From Utricularia gibba (lineage: Eukaryota > Plantae > Magnoliophyta): a stretch of 64,000 nt of DNA. A program made the translations under genes and the position numbers. The DNA is taken from contig NEEC01000012.1 in NCBI GenBank assembly GCA_002189035.1, positions 1,736,001-1,800,000 on the forward strand, read 5' to 3'. Every line of letters begins with the position of its first letter. Positions within the stretch are counted from its first letter, which is position 1. Of the stretch, positions 49,101 through 55,166 are shown one piece after another. The notes below the pieces were generated by a model, which worked only from the letters and a program-made list of their open reading frames with translations, was not told the origin of the DNA and did no database searches.

Positions 49101-50555
49101 CGCCTCCGCGGGTGAGCGAGGCATTGCGACCGGTGCCGGAGCAGCAACCGCCGGACAAGAATGCAGGCGATTGGTGGCCGGCCAATAACAAAGGTCAATT
49201 TTCACATAATAAAAGAATAGTGATCAATTTATCTACGTAAGTTTTCCAAAACCAACCAAAAAAATCATGTAAAACTTGAATTTATAAATCCTTTAATTGT
49301 ACTCTTATTTAAAATGATAAAAAATATATAATATATGTATTTGTGTTATATATTATTTTATGAGTTTTACTTCAGAGAATGTAAGGAGTTAAAATATGAG
49401 AGGCACATAGGTCTTGAAAGGGACCCATCCACACCCTAGGGCAGGCCTGTTGCAACAAGTATCACCCAGAGAACTTACTTTTTTTCCTCAGCAATTAAAA
49501 AAACATTTTTTTCTCAAACCCCATGTAACATTTTCCAGAATTAAACAATATTCAATAAGAAAATATTATTCAAAAATAGCAGGGTGGGTAGTAGGGGTGG
49601 AGGAATAACCATAGGAATGGGAGTATGGGGCATATGTGGTGTCATAATATGTGGATGGAATAAAATATGTTTAATTGATAAATTGTATTTCATATAAAAT
49701 ATAATCAAATAAAAAATAGTTTCTTGATGAAATATCAAATGAGAAAAAATTAGAATATCAATTCCCAATCCTAATATGTCATAAATTATAATATATTTAT
49801 TAATATTTTTCATCTTATACACCATATCAAACACAATCTTGAATAATAGTGAATGGGTTGCAAAAAAATACTTGTAAAACTCAAATTTAAAAGATATTAA
49901 ATGAATTTATTTGTTTATTTTATTTTTTTAATGAAAATAAAAAGGAGGAAGAGAGAGAGTGTTGGGGAATTTTGAAGGGAAGAAGGTAAATTTGGGTAAA
50001 GAAGTTTTTTACGCTGATGTTTTTAATCACTGTTCTGTTCTGACCCAAACACTGACACTCGCACCACTGCCATCAACGCCTCTTTTAGGACAGAGAGCGA
50101 CAGAGGGTGCTGAGACCTGTCAACCGGAGTTCTCTCTTCCTCCTTTATGCCCTGCTTTTCCCCTTTCGGGGCTTCTGTGTGTGTTTGAGTGTATTTGTAA
50201 AGGAAGAAAGGGCTGCTGCTGCTTCTGCTGCAAGCTTTCTAGATTTTTTTGTTTCAGGGAAGGAGGAGGAGGTTGATTTCTTTTTTTCTCTTGATATGTT
50301 GTTGATGGAAAGATGGATTGAAGGTTGAATTTTAATGGTCGGAGAATGAAAGCAGCCGGATTTGATTTCTGGGTTTTTGCGGATGCATCGGGTTGAATGA
50401 TTTAGAAGCTGGATTCTCAGAGCAATTTACACCAAGACCAGAACCAGTTTTCTACAGGAGTAGGCGGGGGGGAGCCGCCGTCGCCGCTAAAGAAAAGGGC
50501 ATCTTACTTTTTACCTCCTGCGGTCACCCCCGAATATGCGAAATTTCGACAAAAC

Positions 50556-51797
50556 ATGGGGGATAGCAGCAACTTCACTGCGCCGCCGCCATCGCGGTTA
50601 GCTCCGAGAGGCGAGATTGTTGAAGTACAAGGCGGCCACATTGTACGGGCGACCGGAAGAAAAGACCGTCATAGCAAAGTTTGCACTGCGAAAGGCCCCA
50701 GAGACCGCCGCGTGCGTCTCGCGGCGCACACGGCGATTCAGTTTTACGATGTTCAGGACCGGCTTGGATACGACCGCCCGAGTAAAGCTGTAGACTGGCT
50801 AATCAAAAAGGCGAAAACTGCAATTGATGAGCTCGCGCAGCTGCCTCCTTGGCACCCCACTGGGCAAAATGTGAACTTTGAGCGAGATGAGGAGCACAAC
50901 AAGTGTGAAGAGGAGGAGCAGCAGCAGCAGCAGCAGCATGGGGAGCTGGTGGCTTCTGAGGCGTCAAGTAAACGGCAGGTTATGATGGCTGGAGGTGAAG
51001 ATGGCATGCACAAAAATCCCAATTCGCAGAATTCCAGTTTTTTGCATTCATCTCTACATTCTGATGCCATTGCGGATACAATGAAGTCCTTGTTTCCAAT
51101 GGGTGCTTCAGCAGAAGCTAGCTCTTCGTCTATGCAGTTTCAGGGCTTCCAAGCTTCAGACTTGCTATCAGGAAATAGCACTAATAGCCAGGATCTGAGG
51201 CTCTCGCTGCAGTCATTTCAAGATCCAATTTTGCTTCACCATCAGCCTCCAGAGCAAGCGCACCAACGAGCATACTCTCTCTTGGGCTTCGATGGAACAG
51301 CCAATTGGGCAGAGCACCATCAACACGCAGCAGCTGCTGCTACGGCAGCGGCGGAGCTCAGCCGATTCCAGCGGTTAACAGCTTGGAATCCCGGCGGTGA
51401 AGACTCAAACAATGGAAATGGAGGCGCAGCTCAGGGTTTCCTGTTCAATTCACAGCAGCCGACTCTGCAGCAGCTTTCAGGGCATACCCATTTTTCTTCA
51501 CAGAGGGGACCCCTTCAGTCCAGTAACACACCCTCAGTTCGTGCTTGGATGGACCCATCAGGCGTAGCAACAGCCATTGCTTCATCTCATCATAACCAAC
51601 ATCAGCAGCAACACCAGCACCTCCTCCTCCCTACTGTAGTTCCTATTTATCCATCTTCAACGCAAGGCATTGGATATGCATCTGGATCCGGCGGTTTCTC
51701 TGGATTCCCAATTCCTGCACGAATTCATGGTGATGTAGAGGAGCACGATGGCTATTCCGATAAGCCGTCCTCCGTCTCCTCCGATTCTCGCCACTAA
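50556..51797 (+). CDS. TCP4: CIN-class TCP transcription factor, TCP4-like copy A (413 aa from the first in-frame AUG)
   Basis: [65 protein letters not shown]; [14 protein letters not shown]; RGPLQSS; PARIHG; SSDSRH end. Confidence 0.95.
51503..51523 (+). promoter_or_regulatory. miR319 target site in TCP4-like A
   Basis: GAGGGGACCCCTTCAGTCCAG, complementary to miR319 (UUGGACUGAAGGGAGCUCCCU), in the RGPLQS coding motif. Confidence 0.92.
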
Positions 51798-53915
51798 TCC
51801 ACCTCACGCTCCCTTCTTCCATCAAAGGTGAGACGGGTACAGTCATACACTCCCTTGTCATACCTTTATAAAATCTCAACCATGCTCCTCATCAAATCTT
51901 CCTTTTCCCTCTTTTCATTTCCCATCTTTATACAGACAGCGTTGCTCCTTTTGCGATGGAGAAGCTGCTCGAGTGGATTTTGCTTCTACCTGTGGCTCCA
52001 AGAATCATCCTTGGGTACAAGTTCTTTTCAGTTACTCTATCTCATTTGACTAGAAGCGTGTTAGTTTTCTTCAGCTTTAGTTGCTCATCGGTTATCTCCT
52101 AGAAGCTTGCTCTCTGTTTTCTTTTGTATCCTCTGCTACTTCTGCTAGTGCTTGAATCCACCACATTGCAAGGACAATGAACGCAGGTCCCTTCTCTTGA
52201 GTTAGTGACAGATTATTGAAGTTTATCTGAGTGATTAAGACCAGATTTCTTCTGATTAACTCAGTGGGGGGTGAGAGTGTGATTGCTGCGCACTTTCTTG
52301 TCGTCTTCATTGTTTTTTCTTTGGAACCAGTAGAGTAGTAGTAGTGTGTGTACTTGGTGGTCATCATCAAGAACCCCATTGGGGAATGGTCCCCCTGCAC
52401 TGCAAATCTGCTGCTGTGATGAGAAGCTCGCTTTGCTCTCAACTCTCAACTCTTCCATGGACAGCGCATTGCAGGGCAGCCAGTCAGGGGCGCCCCTTCT
52501 ACACACAGAGAACCTCCCTCCCTTCATCTTCTGTTACATCCAACTCCATCTACTTTTTTTCACCATTCGCTTTTAGGTGTTTCAACTCAAAACTGAAGGA
52601 TTGGATTTTATAATAATTAGAATTAGAAGTTAATTTTTATAACAAGTAAAGATATTTTATAAAATACTTATTTTTACTTGTATTTTAAATTATAAATTAT
52701 AAAATAAATCATACATACTGCATCTTTAACATCAACAATTATAAAGAACAGAAATAAATAATTTATTATTTTATTTATAATTTTTTTTTATTTTTTATAA
52801 TATTGTTCATTTAAAATACTCAATTTTTTTGATTTTAAATTATTTCATTTCAGAAAAAAAGAGTTTATATAATATTAGTAAAATTATTTTATTTGAATAA
52901 ATCCATTCCCACATTCATAACTAATGTGGATACTATCATTAGGTCTCTAATTTTATAATCTATCTCTTTTAGATACTTAGAGTTCTCGTTCAATACCATC
53001 TTGTGTTACTATTAGTACGTGTTTGGATTTGATTCTTATACCCAATGTAACAAAATATCATTTCTTTTTACGATACTGTTTGTTTTAGACATTTAATCCT
53101 TACGATTTAATGTTTTTTTCTTTTTAGAAAAAGATTTCATGTAAAATTATAAGATTCTCTCTATTTAAGAATATACTTTTCTCTATTTGTAAGCAATGTG
53201 TGATATCATCACTCGATCCCTCACATTACATTGTTATTTGAAAACCAGTGGAATTGGGCTTTTAAACATGGCCCATTATATATTGGGCCATTCTGGTACG
53301 GTCAAAGGTCCCATCGGGTGTAATGGGCTCAACGCCTAAATGTTTGTTTTTTCAAAATTTTGTCGCCGAAAGTTTTGAAAATCTGGTTTTTTTGACTCAG
53401 ACAGGATGTCTCAAAATCCATTCCCGAAATTGCTACCAGCTTCAATGAGTCAGGACAGAGAGCGACAGAGGGTGCCGAGAGCTGTCAACCCTAGTTCTCA
53501 GCTTCTTTTTTAGTTCTTGTTCTCCTCCCCCGCATTGTACTGTTCTGATAAAGGAATTTGCTGGGAGGAGAGAAGCCCTTGTTTCTTAGACCTTCTTTCT
53601 AGTTTTTTCTTTTTTTTTTTGAGTTTCCCCATTCTGGATTTTTCTTGCTGTGTTAGTGTTTTTCTTTTGATGGAGTGTTGATTGAAAGATGGGTTAGGTT
53701 GAATTGAATTTTTGGGTCTGGGAAATGAAAATTGGCGAGATTCGATGGCGGGGTGTTGGCAGATGAGCCGGTAGAAGCTGGATCCTCAGAGAATTATACT
53801 CGTAGCCCAAAACCAGTTGCTCACCAGGCAAGACGGCCGAGAACCGCCGAAGAAGAGGGCGTCGTCGTATTCTCCTTCTGAAGCCACCCCCGAATATGCG
53901 AAATTGCGACGAGGG

Positions 53916-55166
53916 ATGGAGGAAAGCAGCAACCACCGCGCAGTGCTGCCGCTGTCGCGGTTAGGTCCGAGAAGCGAGATTGTTGAGGTACAAGGCGGCC
54001 ATATCGTGAGGTCTACCGGAAGAAAAGACCGTCACAGCAAAGTTTGTACTGCGAAAGGTCCCAGAGACCGCCGCGTGCGTCTTGCGGCGCACACGGCGAT
54101 TCAGTTTTACGATGTTCAGGACCGGCTTGGCTACGACCGCCCGAGTAAAGCTGTAGACTGGCTAATCAAGAAGGCGAAAACTGCAATTGATGAGCTCGCG
54201 CAGCTACCTCCTTGGCACCCCGCCTCGCAAACTATGAACTTTGAGCGAGACGAATTGCAGAAAAAGTGTGAAGAGGACCAGCAGCAGCAAAAAGAGGAGT
54301 TAACCGTGCATCATGGGAAACCGGTGATTCCAGGAGCGTCGGGTAAGAAACCGATGATAATGGTTGGAACTGAAGATGAGGTGCATAATAATCCCAGTTC
54401 ACAGAATTCAGGTTTTTTGCCTTCATCTTTAGATTCTGATGCTATTGCTGACACTATAAAGTCATTCTTCCCAATGGGTGCTTCAACAGAAGCTAGCTCT
54501 TCATCCATGCAGTATCGGAGCTTCCAAGCTTCAGATTTGCTGTCAGGAAGCAGCAGCAATAGCCAGGATTTGAGGCTTTCTCTGCAGTCATTTCAAGATC
54601 CAATTTTGCTTCACCATCAGCCTTCGGAGCATTCCCACCAACAAGGACACTCTCTATTGGGTTTTGATGGAACACCCAATTGGGCAGAGCACCATCAACA
54701 AGCTGTAGCTGCTGCAGCGGCAGCGGAGCTCAGCCGATTCCAGCGGTTAACAGCTTGGAATTCCGGCGGAGGAACCTCAAACATTGGAAATGGAGGAGCA
54801 GCTCCAGGTTTCCTGTTCAATTCACAGCAGCCGGCTCTGCAGCAGCTTTCAGGGCATACCCATTTTTCTTCACAGAGGGGACCCCTTCAGTCCAGTAATT
54901 CACCTTCAATTCGTGCTTGGATGGACGCATCAGGCGTAGCAGCATCTGTTTCTTCATCTGACCATAGCCAACATCAACAGCTACACCACCAGCTTCTCCC
55001 TTCATATATTCCAATGTATCCGTCTTCAATGCAAGGCAACGGATTTGCATCTGGAGCTGGTGGCTTTTCCGGATTCCCAATTCTTGCACGAATTCATGGT
55101 GATGTAGAGGAGCACGGTGGCTATTCTGATAAGCCGTCGTCCGCCTCATCAGATTCTTGCCACTAA
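53916..55166 (+). CDS. TCP4: CIN-class TCP transcription factor, TCP4-like copy B (416 aa from the first in-frame AUG)
   Basis: Same TCP domain and motifs as copy A. The ORF-track start at 53817 is TTG; the first in-frame ATG is 53916. Confidence 0.95.
54875..54895 (+). promoter_or_regulatory. miR319 target site in TCP4-like B
   Basis: GAGGGGACCCCTTCAGTCCAG, identical to the copy A site. Confidence 0.92.

Follow-up and report, generated by a model that had tools for sequence, protein, structure and literature searches.

The window, a stretch of 64,000 nucleotides of Utricularia gibba (contig NEEC01000012.1), contains two tandem TCP4-like paralogs, here called genes A and B. Both match the TCP domain PF03634 (E 1e-33 and 7e-32); in protein comparison the top relative is a Sesamum TCP4-like protein (67% identity), and Antirrhinum cincinnata and TCP4-type proteins of petunia and tomato are also among the matches. 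Exact-protein look-ups gave no match for the gene A protein or for Vitis P0040. The motif GGGGACCCCTTCAGTCCAG is the same in the two coding sequences, and we take it to be the miR319 target site. Genes A and B are miR319-targeted, CIN-type class II TCP genes of the TCP4/LANCEOLATE/CINCINNATA clade. Around their annotated starts lie the following features (positions are those of the window).

Gene A, 50313 to 50321, plus strand: minimal uORF ATG GAT TGA, differing from the conserved ATG GGT TAG
Gene A, 50346 to 50396, plus strand: MKAAGFDFWVFADASG and stop, a shortened relic of the conserved-peptide uORF MEFGRLNGRAFWERQ..., ending 12 nt 5' of the CTG
Gene A, 50403 to 50405, plus strand: in-frame TAG adjoining AAG-CTG, the 5' limit of the extension
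Gene A, 50406, plus strand: AAG codon between the TAG (50403-50405) and the CTG at 50409
Gene A, 50409 to 50411, plus strand: candidate CUG start, AAGCTGG, with A at -3 and G at +4
Gene A, 50409 to 50555, plus strand: proposed N-terminal extension, 49 codons from the candidate CTG to ATG 50556
Gene A, 50536 to 50601, plus strand: out-of-frame uAUG at -20 and its uORF, 21 codons, overlapping the annotated ATG
Gene A, 50556 to 51797, plus strand: annotated TCP4-like CDS, 413 aa
Gene A, about 50655 to 50999, plus strand: TCP domain, within the CDS
Gene A, 51505 to 51523, plus strand: miR319-type site, within the CDS
Gene B, 53689 to 53697, plus strand: conserved minimal uORF ATG GGT TAG (M-G-stop)
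Gene B, 53725 to 53766, plus strand: MKIGEIRWRGVGR and stop, a shortened relic of the conserved-peptide uORF, ending 11 nt 5' of the CTG
Gene B, 53772 to 53774, plus strand: in-frame TAG adjoining AAG-CTG
Gene B, 53778 to 53780, plus strand: candidate CUG start, AAGCTGG
Gene B, 53778 to 53915, plus strand: proposed N-terminal extension, 46 codons from the candidate CTG to ATG 53916
Gene B, 53896 to 53964, plus strand: out-of-frame uAUG at -20 and overlapping uORF, 22 codons
Gene B, 53916 to 55166, plus strand: annotated TCP4-like CDS, 416 aa
Gene B, 54877 to 54895, plus strand: miR319-type site, within the CDS

The TAG and CTG of both genes, the CTG context in gene A, the 49 and 46 codons and the peptides that they spell are as the preliminary description gave them. 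Its comparison of the two paralogs as evidence for a translated extension fares less evenly. The synonymous codon pairs that it listed are genuine, yet they are insufficient alone: dN/dS between A and B is 0.57 in the extension (47 codons) against 0.32 in the CDS, the former not being clearly below 1. The compensated local indel, on the other hand, dissolves on alignment; there is no frameshift pair, the difference in length is a single 9-nt gap (MAFFT), and beyond it there are at most whole-codon indels near ASYF/ASSY. Nor is the open frame in A and B by itself beyond chance: frame 0 is still open in 14-16% of dinucleotide shuffles of the window genes, and gene A has a longer open stretch, 63 codons, in frame +1 than in frame 0. 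What the pair does display is a step at the TAG, where identity rises and gaps turn phase-preserving, the upstream leader being 55% identical (gaps of 5, 16, 3, 1 and 11 nt), the extension 72% (the one gap of 9 nt) and the start of the CDS 84% (gaps of 3 and 3 nt). A and B agree in 18/29 of the columns that are conserved between species versus 8/17 elsewhere, an excess that is not significant. Constraint on the extension inside this lineage is weak, as is the evidence for an arm from two paralogs alone; it is the orthologs that decide.

We compared 12 loci, genes A and B plus 10 ortholog loci, from Nelumbo to Lamiales. In every one, frame 0 is open 5' of the annotated ATG, for 47-296 codons back to an in-frame stop, and the annotated Met is the first in-frame Met, no ATG occurring in frame in the upstream stretch; the other frames are mostly short. 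Seven loci (Nelumbo, S. indicum, Erythranthe, Jatropha, Durio, Nicotiana, and Genlisea) were reached via ordinary short gene models, so that subset was not chosen for having an extension. The distance from AAG-CTG-GA to the ATG is a multiple of three in 10/10 loci, with ten lengths between 138 and 453 nt, and over this stretch frame 0 is without stops, whereas frame +1 has 1-6. The shuffle probability of an open frame is 0.013-0.16 per locus. Stops or frameshifts in the orthologs, which the preliminary description had named as contrary evidence, are absent from the extension region of the loci compared; depletion of ATG inside it is mild only. Genlisea has the AAGCTGGA anchor out of frame, and its only CTG in frame is a second one (LLDLQRN).

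The peptide itself is conserved. Recurrent motifs in the orthologs are KLEQEKHKGLSLDPQRN, an acidic run, LLYGRLD, PPKKRSYFPSSSS, and E[HY]ARLREK-M; arm motifs are present in >35 species or gene models, Ranunculales and Proteales included, with a range from Nelumbo and Coptis to Lamiales. The third codon position is the most variable (minority bases at positions 1, 2, and 3: 10, 13, and 25). The Arg of KKR is spelled by five codons of both codon families (AGG and CGC three times each, CGA twice, CGG and CGT once), and that of LDPQR is CGA in Cucumis versus AGG in others. Of the motifs singled out in the window genes, KKR (a putative NLS) and TPEYAK, the orthologs have KKR and E[HY]A[KR], their codons differing synonymously or by codon family. 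By frame, phase, and codon usage, comparison of the leaders shows this stretch to be conserved as coding sequence and kept in frame across eudicots. The unannotated N-terminal arm proposed at the outset is supported by ortholog frame, phase, and motifs, and the real TCP4-like protein probably carries it. A word-index protein search with the window species' own extension found no match: its arm is too short for this and has diverged too far, and gene models mostly begin at the AUG.

Neither the 8 orthologs nor the two window genes deviate from AAG CTG GA, and Leu is always encoded by CTG; this codon, in good context, sits at the 5' edge of peptide conservation, in line with its initial description as a candidate start in strong context. 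An in-frame stop adjoins AAG-CTG in Durio and in window genes A and B; in Jatropha and S. indicum the stop is 7 codons upstream of it. The tomato cDNA record AAG43412.1 has an ATG (Met) in the CTG column. Val takes the place of the annotated Met in Solanum paralogs, P0062 and P0135, and the ORF runs on. A downstream hairpin that might favour the CUG was considered but is not supported, RNA structure 3' of the CUG not being significant (z -0.7 to +0.6). Judging from this pattern of conservation, translation of the arm most likely starts at the invariant CUG.

Overall, we favour, at a probability of roughly 0.6, a model where the leader of A and B encodes a shortened form of a clade-wide, CUG-started N-terminal extension. 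Some scanning or re-initiating 40S subunits would start at the CUG (A at -3, G at +4), and the long proteoform would bear a disordered arm with LDPQR, the basic, phosphoacceptor-like PPKKR(A)SY(F), and E[HY]A[KR]. Subunits passing the CUG would first meet the conserved out-of-frame AUG at -20, which in gene A falls within the E-Y-A codons of the extension; its ORF overruns the annotated AUG, so that less of the short form would be made and the balance would shift to the long form. Also in the leader are the conserved MG-stop uORF and, with its end 10-40 nt 5' of the CUG, the conserved-peptide uORF; the two probably gate the arrival of ribosomes. With seven AUGs before the CUG in gene A and five in gene B, few ribosomes may reach it. 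In the window species the arm, about 47-50 codons versus about 120 in most eudicots, lacks its middle two thirds; a 30-nt deletion between two CTGGA repeats, together with loss of the His/Gln/Glu-rich middle, brought it down to 49 and 46 codons.

Such shortening invites another explanation, namely that the arm is coding in most eudicots and, cut to a third in this small-genome Lamiales species, is here neither translated nor needed any more, a fairly recent tandem duplication accounting for the leftover open frame and for the likeness of A and B. The dN/dS of 0.57, not clearly below 1, would fit, as would the lack of excess identity between A and B at motif columns, the shuffle probability of about 0.15 per window copy, the missing two thirds, and the upstream uORFs, degenerate in both copies alike. 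Nonetheless, we regard such decay as unlikely, given that TAG-AAG-CTG-GAT, PPKKRAS, PEYAK, and the -20 uATG are retained in both copies despite a CDS dS of 0.35, that exactly at the TAG identity climbs from 55% to 72% and all gaps from there on are multiples of 3, and that Genlisea, of the same family, keeps LDLQRN, PPRKKRS, and PEHAR in frame.

An untranslated regulatory leader would be conserved at the RNA or DNA level, for the uAUG and protein-binding sites, with the open frame 0 a by-product of triplet-like low-complexity sequence. This would account for wobble positions that are also kept (AGT CTG GAT CCT CAG AGG AAT is near-identical from Nelumbo to Sesamum), for the invariant yAT of E[HY]A, by which the out-of-frame ATG is retained, and for an arm made largely of His/Gln/Glu/Pro/Ser repeats. 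We find it highly improbable, however: Arg persists under both AGG and CGN codons, the wobble base of the Ala that follows the uATG varies freely, ten lengths are every one in phase, the same DNA has 1-6 stops in frame +1, the annotated Met is absent in some species, and the peptide of the +1 uORF overlapping the annotated ATG is not conserved.

There is also a slim chance that the arm is translated from a different start, either an AUG supplied through an upstream exon or a minor splice form, or a near-cognate codon other than this CUG. Gene models of Vitis, Escallonia, and Phaseolus fuse the uORF AUG (MEL..LNG.AFW) in frame to the arm, predictors attach an upstream ATG exon in S. alatum and Cucumis, and gene B has in-frame ATT, ATA, and TTG 3' of the CTG; yet between the stop and the conserved LD.Q the window genes have just AAG and CTG, and the frame of the conserved-peptide uORF relative to the arm varies between species (0 or 1). 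The preliminary description had itself raised the TAG as a splice acceptor for an upstream AUG exon, adding that the candidate donor at 50324 yields no in-frame AUG; in our reading of the sequence, with the AAG/GT donor at 50323/50324, the joined frame meets TGA 50303 before any. Five RNA runs belonging to two studies, RNA being the tool's guess at their label, have contigs with 11/11 sampled words of 50294-50435, unspliced. The TAG is therefore transcribed, not merely a splice acceptor, and the upstream exon is disfavoured; as acceptor of an intron 50324-50405 we reject it for the main form, since the contigs span the stretch. Contigs prove presence, not absence, and a minor spliced form may also exist. 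A far-upstream block, GIWKVEWQGLLGEA, which lies in frame 0 in some species, was also considered as further arm and rejected, being a separate AUG-started uORF read out of frame.

Beyond the CUG-started extension as such, the orthologous leaders may point to a wider role, which we put forward tentatively and at clearly less than even odds: the CUG-started long proteoform, with its arm of about 120 residues, would be the main TCP4/LANCEOLATE/CINCINNATA product across eudicots, under three-tier control by the leader. The tiers would be the M-G-stop uORF, the conserved-peptide uORF (MEFGRLNGRAFWERQ...SEWWQ) with its end 10-40 nt 5' of the CUG, and the out-of-frame uAUG at -20 or -11, the last suppressing the annotated AUG.

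The arm has parallels in other genes. According to the summary that van der Horst et al. (2019, PMC6380273) give of Simpson et al. (2010), Arabidopsis FCA and the conserved extensions with a CUG(G) start likewise have no in-frame AUG and a conserved peptide between; FCA belongs to another gene family and its CUG was shown experimentally, whereas the TCP4 CUG is a candidate from sequence comparison, lying in a leader that also has a minimal uORF, an out-of-frame uAUG just before the annotated AUG, and a conserved-peptide uORF. The "5' extended mORFs" of van der Horst et al. (2019, RNA 25:292, PMC6380273) are of the same class and signature, with peptide conservation from stop to AUG and a near-cognate codon in a Kozak-like context. 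That screen was anchored on Arabidopsis, and its main text names no TCP gene or TCP4/3/10/2/24 locus code, though the supplementary lists may include one (PMC6380273). Human non-AUG extensions follow the same logic, an AUG-less conserved in-frame ORF with a conserved near-cognate codon that is AUG in some species (Ivanov et al. 2011, PMC3105428); those cases are animal and several are backed by reporter or footprint data, whereas the TCP4 arm is from plants and from comparison. A further parallel is the tomato "cycloidea" cDNA protein (AAG43412.1, UniProt Q9FR55, P0125), where the same arm (MEREIANKGLSLDPQRN...PKKRSYLPS...EHAAALRGK-M) is joined to the TCP domain; it has an ordinary ATG start in the CTG column, and the C-terminus of the record diverges. 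We found no link drawn between this record and the AUG-less arm of other species. CPuORFs are also conserved peptides of 5' leaders; unlike them, with their own stop, the arm is in frame and runs into the main ORF uninterrupted. Further 5', the TCP4-type leader does have a true CPuORF. In the literature searched we found no paper describing a CUG-started TCP4 arm and nothing joining TCP4 with non-AUG initiation or CIN-TCP with uORFs; among papers joining TCP4 and uORF, none concerns the arm by title or abstract. TCP genes receive no mention in the main texts of Hiragori 2021, Li & Liu 2020, and Wu 2023, or in the main text and eight supplements of ESUCA 2020. The petunia PhLA study treated the region as 5'UTR, its "UTR" fragment for silencing running from -235 to -5 (PMC7498528).

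If the arm is real, these findings would bear on the design of crop transgenes and CRISPR edits, as with that petunia fragment, and would account for the erratic "long" TCP4 gene models with invented upstream exons. TCP4, LANCEOLATE, and CINCINNATA regulate leaf shape, senescence, and flower form; they are central to these processes and much used, and their control by miR319 is a textbook case. To this pathway the arm and its layered uORF leader would add translational control, together with new protein motifs, including a basic Ser/Tyr motif. Should the long form be the main product, constructs of the past two decades that begin at the annotated AUG would have assayed a truncated protein, cut off from its translational control. 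To our knowledge, documented cases of non-AUG initiation in plants are few, and the TCP4 arm would offer a very clean comparative case.

Two tandem TCP4-like genes, A and B, provide the frame of reference for the extension discussed here.

Gene A: 50556-51797, + strand, TCP4-like coding sequence of 413 aa with a TCP domain.
Gene B: 53916-55166, + strand, TCP4-like coding sequence of 416 aa with a TCP domain.

The closest relatives of both proteins are Lamiales TCP4-like (67% identity in Sesamum); the matches further include Antirrhinum cincinnata and Solanaceae TCP4/LA-type proteins. A GGGGACCCCTTCAGTCCAG site, of the type that miR319 targets in this family, is identical in the two genes. As the preliminary description had it, TAG AAG CTG GAT occurs exactly upstream of both (CTG at 50409 in A and 53778 in B), and from this CTG to the annotated ATG frame 0, that of the coding sequence, runs without a stop for 49 and 46 codons, respectively, yielding the very peptides it proposed. 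Within the window, the excess over chance of such an open extension is only weak: the +1 frame of A is open for 63 codons, longer than frame 0, and frame 0 is left open in approximately 15% of dinucleotide shuffles of the window genes. Between A and B, dN/dS (Nei-Gojobori) is 0.57 in the extension, with 12.8 synonymous and 27.2 non-synonymous differences, and 0.32 in the coding sequence (dS 0.35); A/B identity shows no significant excess at columns that other species conserve (18/29, vs. 8/17 elsewhere). The only clear signal within the window is that conservation steps up at the TAG: the upstream leaders are 55% identical, with gaps of 5, 16, 3, 1, and 11 nt; the extensions 72%, a single 9-nt gap accounting for their difference in length, as described; and the coding starts 84%, with gaps of 3 and 3 nt.

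It is the orthologs that decide the case. A full-length search returned some 20 "long" entries, either gene models or ORF calls, with N-termini running uninterrupted through the leader and sharing the motifs ...NQKLEQEKHKGLSLDPQRN-(His/Gln)-...SRHVEEEEE...QLLYGRLD...PPPKKRSYFPSSSS...E[HY]ARLREK-MGE... (Vitis, Liquidambar, Cucumis, Camellia, Impatiens, Escallonia, Cornus, Ipomoea, Sesamum, Phtheirospermum, Buddleja, and Abeliophyllum); more searches recovered the same motifs in Rhodamnia, Salix, Bauhinia, Coptis, Papaver, Castilleja, Cichorium, Populus, and Phaseolus. Since long models are a biased sample, the DNA of ten loci was compared, seven reached via ordinary short models (Nelumbo, S. 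indicum, Erythranthe, Jatropha, Durio, Nicotiana, and Genlisea) and three via long models (S. alatum, Cucumis, and one Logan contig). Together with the two window genes this makes 12 loci; in all 12, frame 0 has no stop for 47-296 codons ahead of the annotated ATG, the first frame-0 Met is always the annotated one, and the other two frames over the same leaders are mostly short. The window peptides align with the family at LD.Q, QNQ[FL], PP-KKRAS-Y, and PE-Y-A-K-[FL]-R; Genlisea, of the same family as the window species, retains LDLQRN, PPRKKRS, and PEHAR in frame. In Genlisea aurea (locus L005, 586-816), however, an in-frame TGA overlaps the AAGCTGGA anchor, which is shifted by one base from the phase of the arm and adjoins a (GAG)n run; of the two CTGs, just the second (LLDLQRN) is in frame. 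The shift could be a true change in this lineage or an indel of the draft assembly. In Sesamum alatum (L001) and Cucumis melo (L006), public models P0008 and P0095 add a predicted upstream ATG exon to the AUG-less arm; the contiguous genomic ORF of the arm is without ATG in both, and it is probably the non-AUG arm that led to these exons as artefacts of annotation.

Constraint on the frame-0 protein is argued by the preserved phase, the switched Arg codons, the loss of Met with the ORF intact, and the aligned motifs. Frame preservation, named in the preliminary description as a check on its reading, is borne out: the AAGCTGGA anchor and the annotated ATG are separated by ten different lengths, from 138 to 453 nt, in 10 loci, and all 10 are divisible by 3. 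Over this stretch frame 0 holds no stop and frame +1 holds 1-6, and the shuffle probability of an open frame 0 is 0.013-0.16 per locus. Five codons serve for the Arg of KKR, namely AGG (three times), CGC (three), CGA (two), CGG, and CGT; the Arg of LDPQR is CGA in Cucumis versus AGG in the others, and minority bases across K-K-R-S-Y number 10, 13, and 25 at codon positions 1, 2, and 3. In the Solanum paralogs P0050, P0056, and P0057, as well as in protein records P0062 and P0135, the annotated Met is replaced by Val with the ORF intact; translation of these TCP4-like paralogs must begin upstream of where the AUG usually lies. A new Met has arisen within the arm of some Solanum copies (MYQDLD, at the LLYGRLD motif). 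The arm contains no Pfam domain and has the look of a disordered segment that carries short linear motifs; a role of KKR-S-Y as NLS or phospho-site is a guess.

CAA AAG CTG GAA (Q-K-L-E of KLEQEKHK) is invariant in eight orthologs, the Leu codon always being CTG, and TAG AAG CTG GAT of the window corresponds to this site. Deletion of 30 nt between two CTGGA repeats yields the window form KL[EQEKHKGLSL]DPQR, the short KL...DPQR form being shared by Ipomoea. In Durio and in genes A and B, AAG CTG directly follows an in-frame stop; the stop lies 7 codons upstream in Jatropha and in S. indicum, 13 codons in Cucumis, and 16 codons in S. alatum. Peptide conservation starts at AAG CTG. Conserved sequence farther upstream was rejected as part of the arm, being a separate uORF whose frame differs among species. 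The tomato cDNA record AAG43412.1 (Q9FR55) starts MEREIANKGLSLDPQRN, with its Met in the column of the conserved Leu/CTG (protein alignment A3), and the candidate CUG is flanked by A at -3 and by G at +4. Such a pattern is the classical sign by which comparative studies recognise non-AUG starts, among them Ivanov et al. 2011 (PMC3105428) and, in plants, van der Horst et al. 2019 (PMC6380273). Tiny AUG uORFs, MI-stop at 50397-50405 (A) and MSR-stop at 53763-53774 (B), end on the TAG itself, and termination would thus fall 3 nt before the candidate start.

Alternatively, as the preliminary description considered, the TAG could be a splice acceptor joining an upstream AUG exon, with a candidate intron at 50324-50405. 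Against this, 11 of 11 sampled words of 50294-50435, which covers that intron plus both junctions, occur unspliced in contigs of five RNA-labelled runs from two studies, the RNA label itself being a guess and contigs proving presence, not absence; from the AAG/GT donor (50323/50324), moreover, the joined frame meets TGA at 50303 ahead of any in-frame AUG by our own reading of the sequence, in line with the earlier one. The CUG-started extension is backed by strong comparative evidence, with the CUG as candidate start: comparison across loci shows the arm as a conserved, AUG-less, in-frame and apparently coding stretch with an invariant CUG as its boundary.

The leader holds further elements.

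Out-of-frame uAUG uORF inside the E[HY]A codons: 50536-50601 (A), 53896-53964 (B).
Minimal uORF ATG GGT TAG: 53689-53697 (B); variant ATG GAT TGA, 50313-50321 (A); in ortholog loci L001, L002-L004, and L006-L010, -297 to -736 from the ATG.
Conserved-peptide uORF: reduced in the window, 50346-50396 (A, 16 codons) and 53725-53766 (B, 13 codons); also in L001-L004, L006, L008, and L010.

E[HY]A is in every case encoded by GAA yAT GCN, with a wobble T that is invariant in 12 loci and a free wobble in the Ala codon after it; an out-of-frame ATG is therefore retained at -20 (-11 in rosids). Its ORF of 9-22 codons overlaps the annotated ATG and shows no peptide conservation among the orthologs. All 9 nt of the minimal uORF (M-G-stop) are preserved in 10 of the 12 TCP4-like leaders (Nelumbo to Lamiales), usually after a GA-rich tract and in varying frame relative to the main ORF. 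The conserved-peptide uORF, AUG-started and of 32-56 codons (ME[FLIV]G[RK]LNG.AFWERQ...SEWWQ.QK), lies in frame 0 or 1, ends 10-40 nt upstream of the conserved CUG, and is absent from the ESUCA CPuORF paper and its supplements. Downstream of the CUG no significant RNA structure was found. Upstream of both leaders lies a near-identical 45-nt block, GGACAGAGAGCGACAGAGGGTGC.GAGA.CTGTCAACC (50090-50135 vs. 53453-53498), near a TCTGACCC-type element (about 50034-50075) that recurs far upstream in Nelumbo, Ipomoea, Erythranthe, and S. alatum, where its translation reads "SDPR/SDPN"; probably this is conserved promoter sequence or an element close to the TSS.

A fraction of 40S subunits would initiate at the CUG to give a long proteoform, and those passing it would reach the -20 uAUG first, lowering use of the annotated AUG, with the flow of ribosomes probably metered by the two upstream uORFs. 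Non-AUG extensions are a known kind of N-terminal extension. We found no literature linking them to TCP4-type genes, with an earlier listing being possible; TCP is mentioned neither in the main texts of the plant screens (van der Horst 2019; Hiragori 2021; Li & Liu 2020; Wu 2023) nor in the ESUCA main text and eight supplements. In petunia, the PhLA study explicitly used -235 to -5 as untranslated 5'UTR (PMC7498528). The conserved leader around the TCP4-type arm is unusually elaborate, and the arm itself would be an addition to the known non-AUG extensions, in a prominent gene family.
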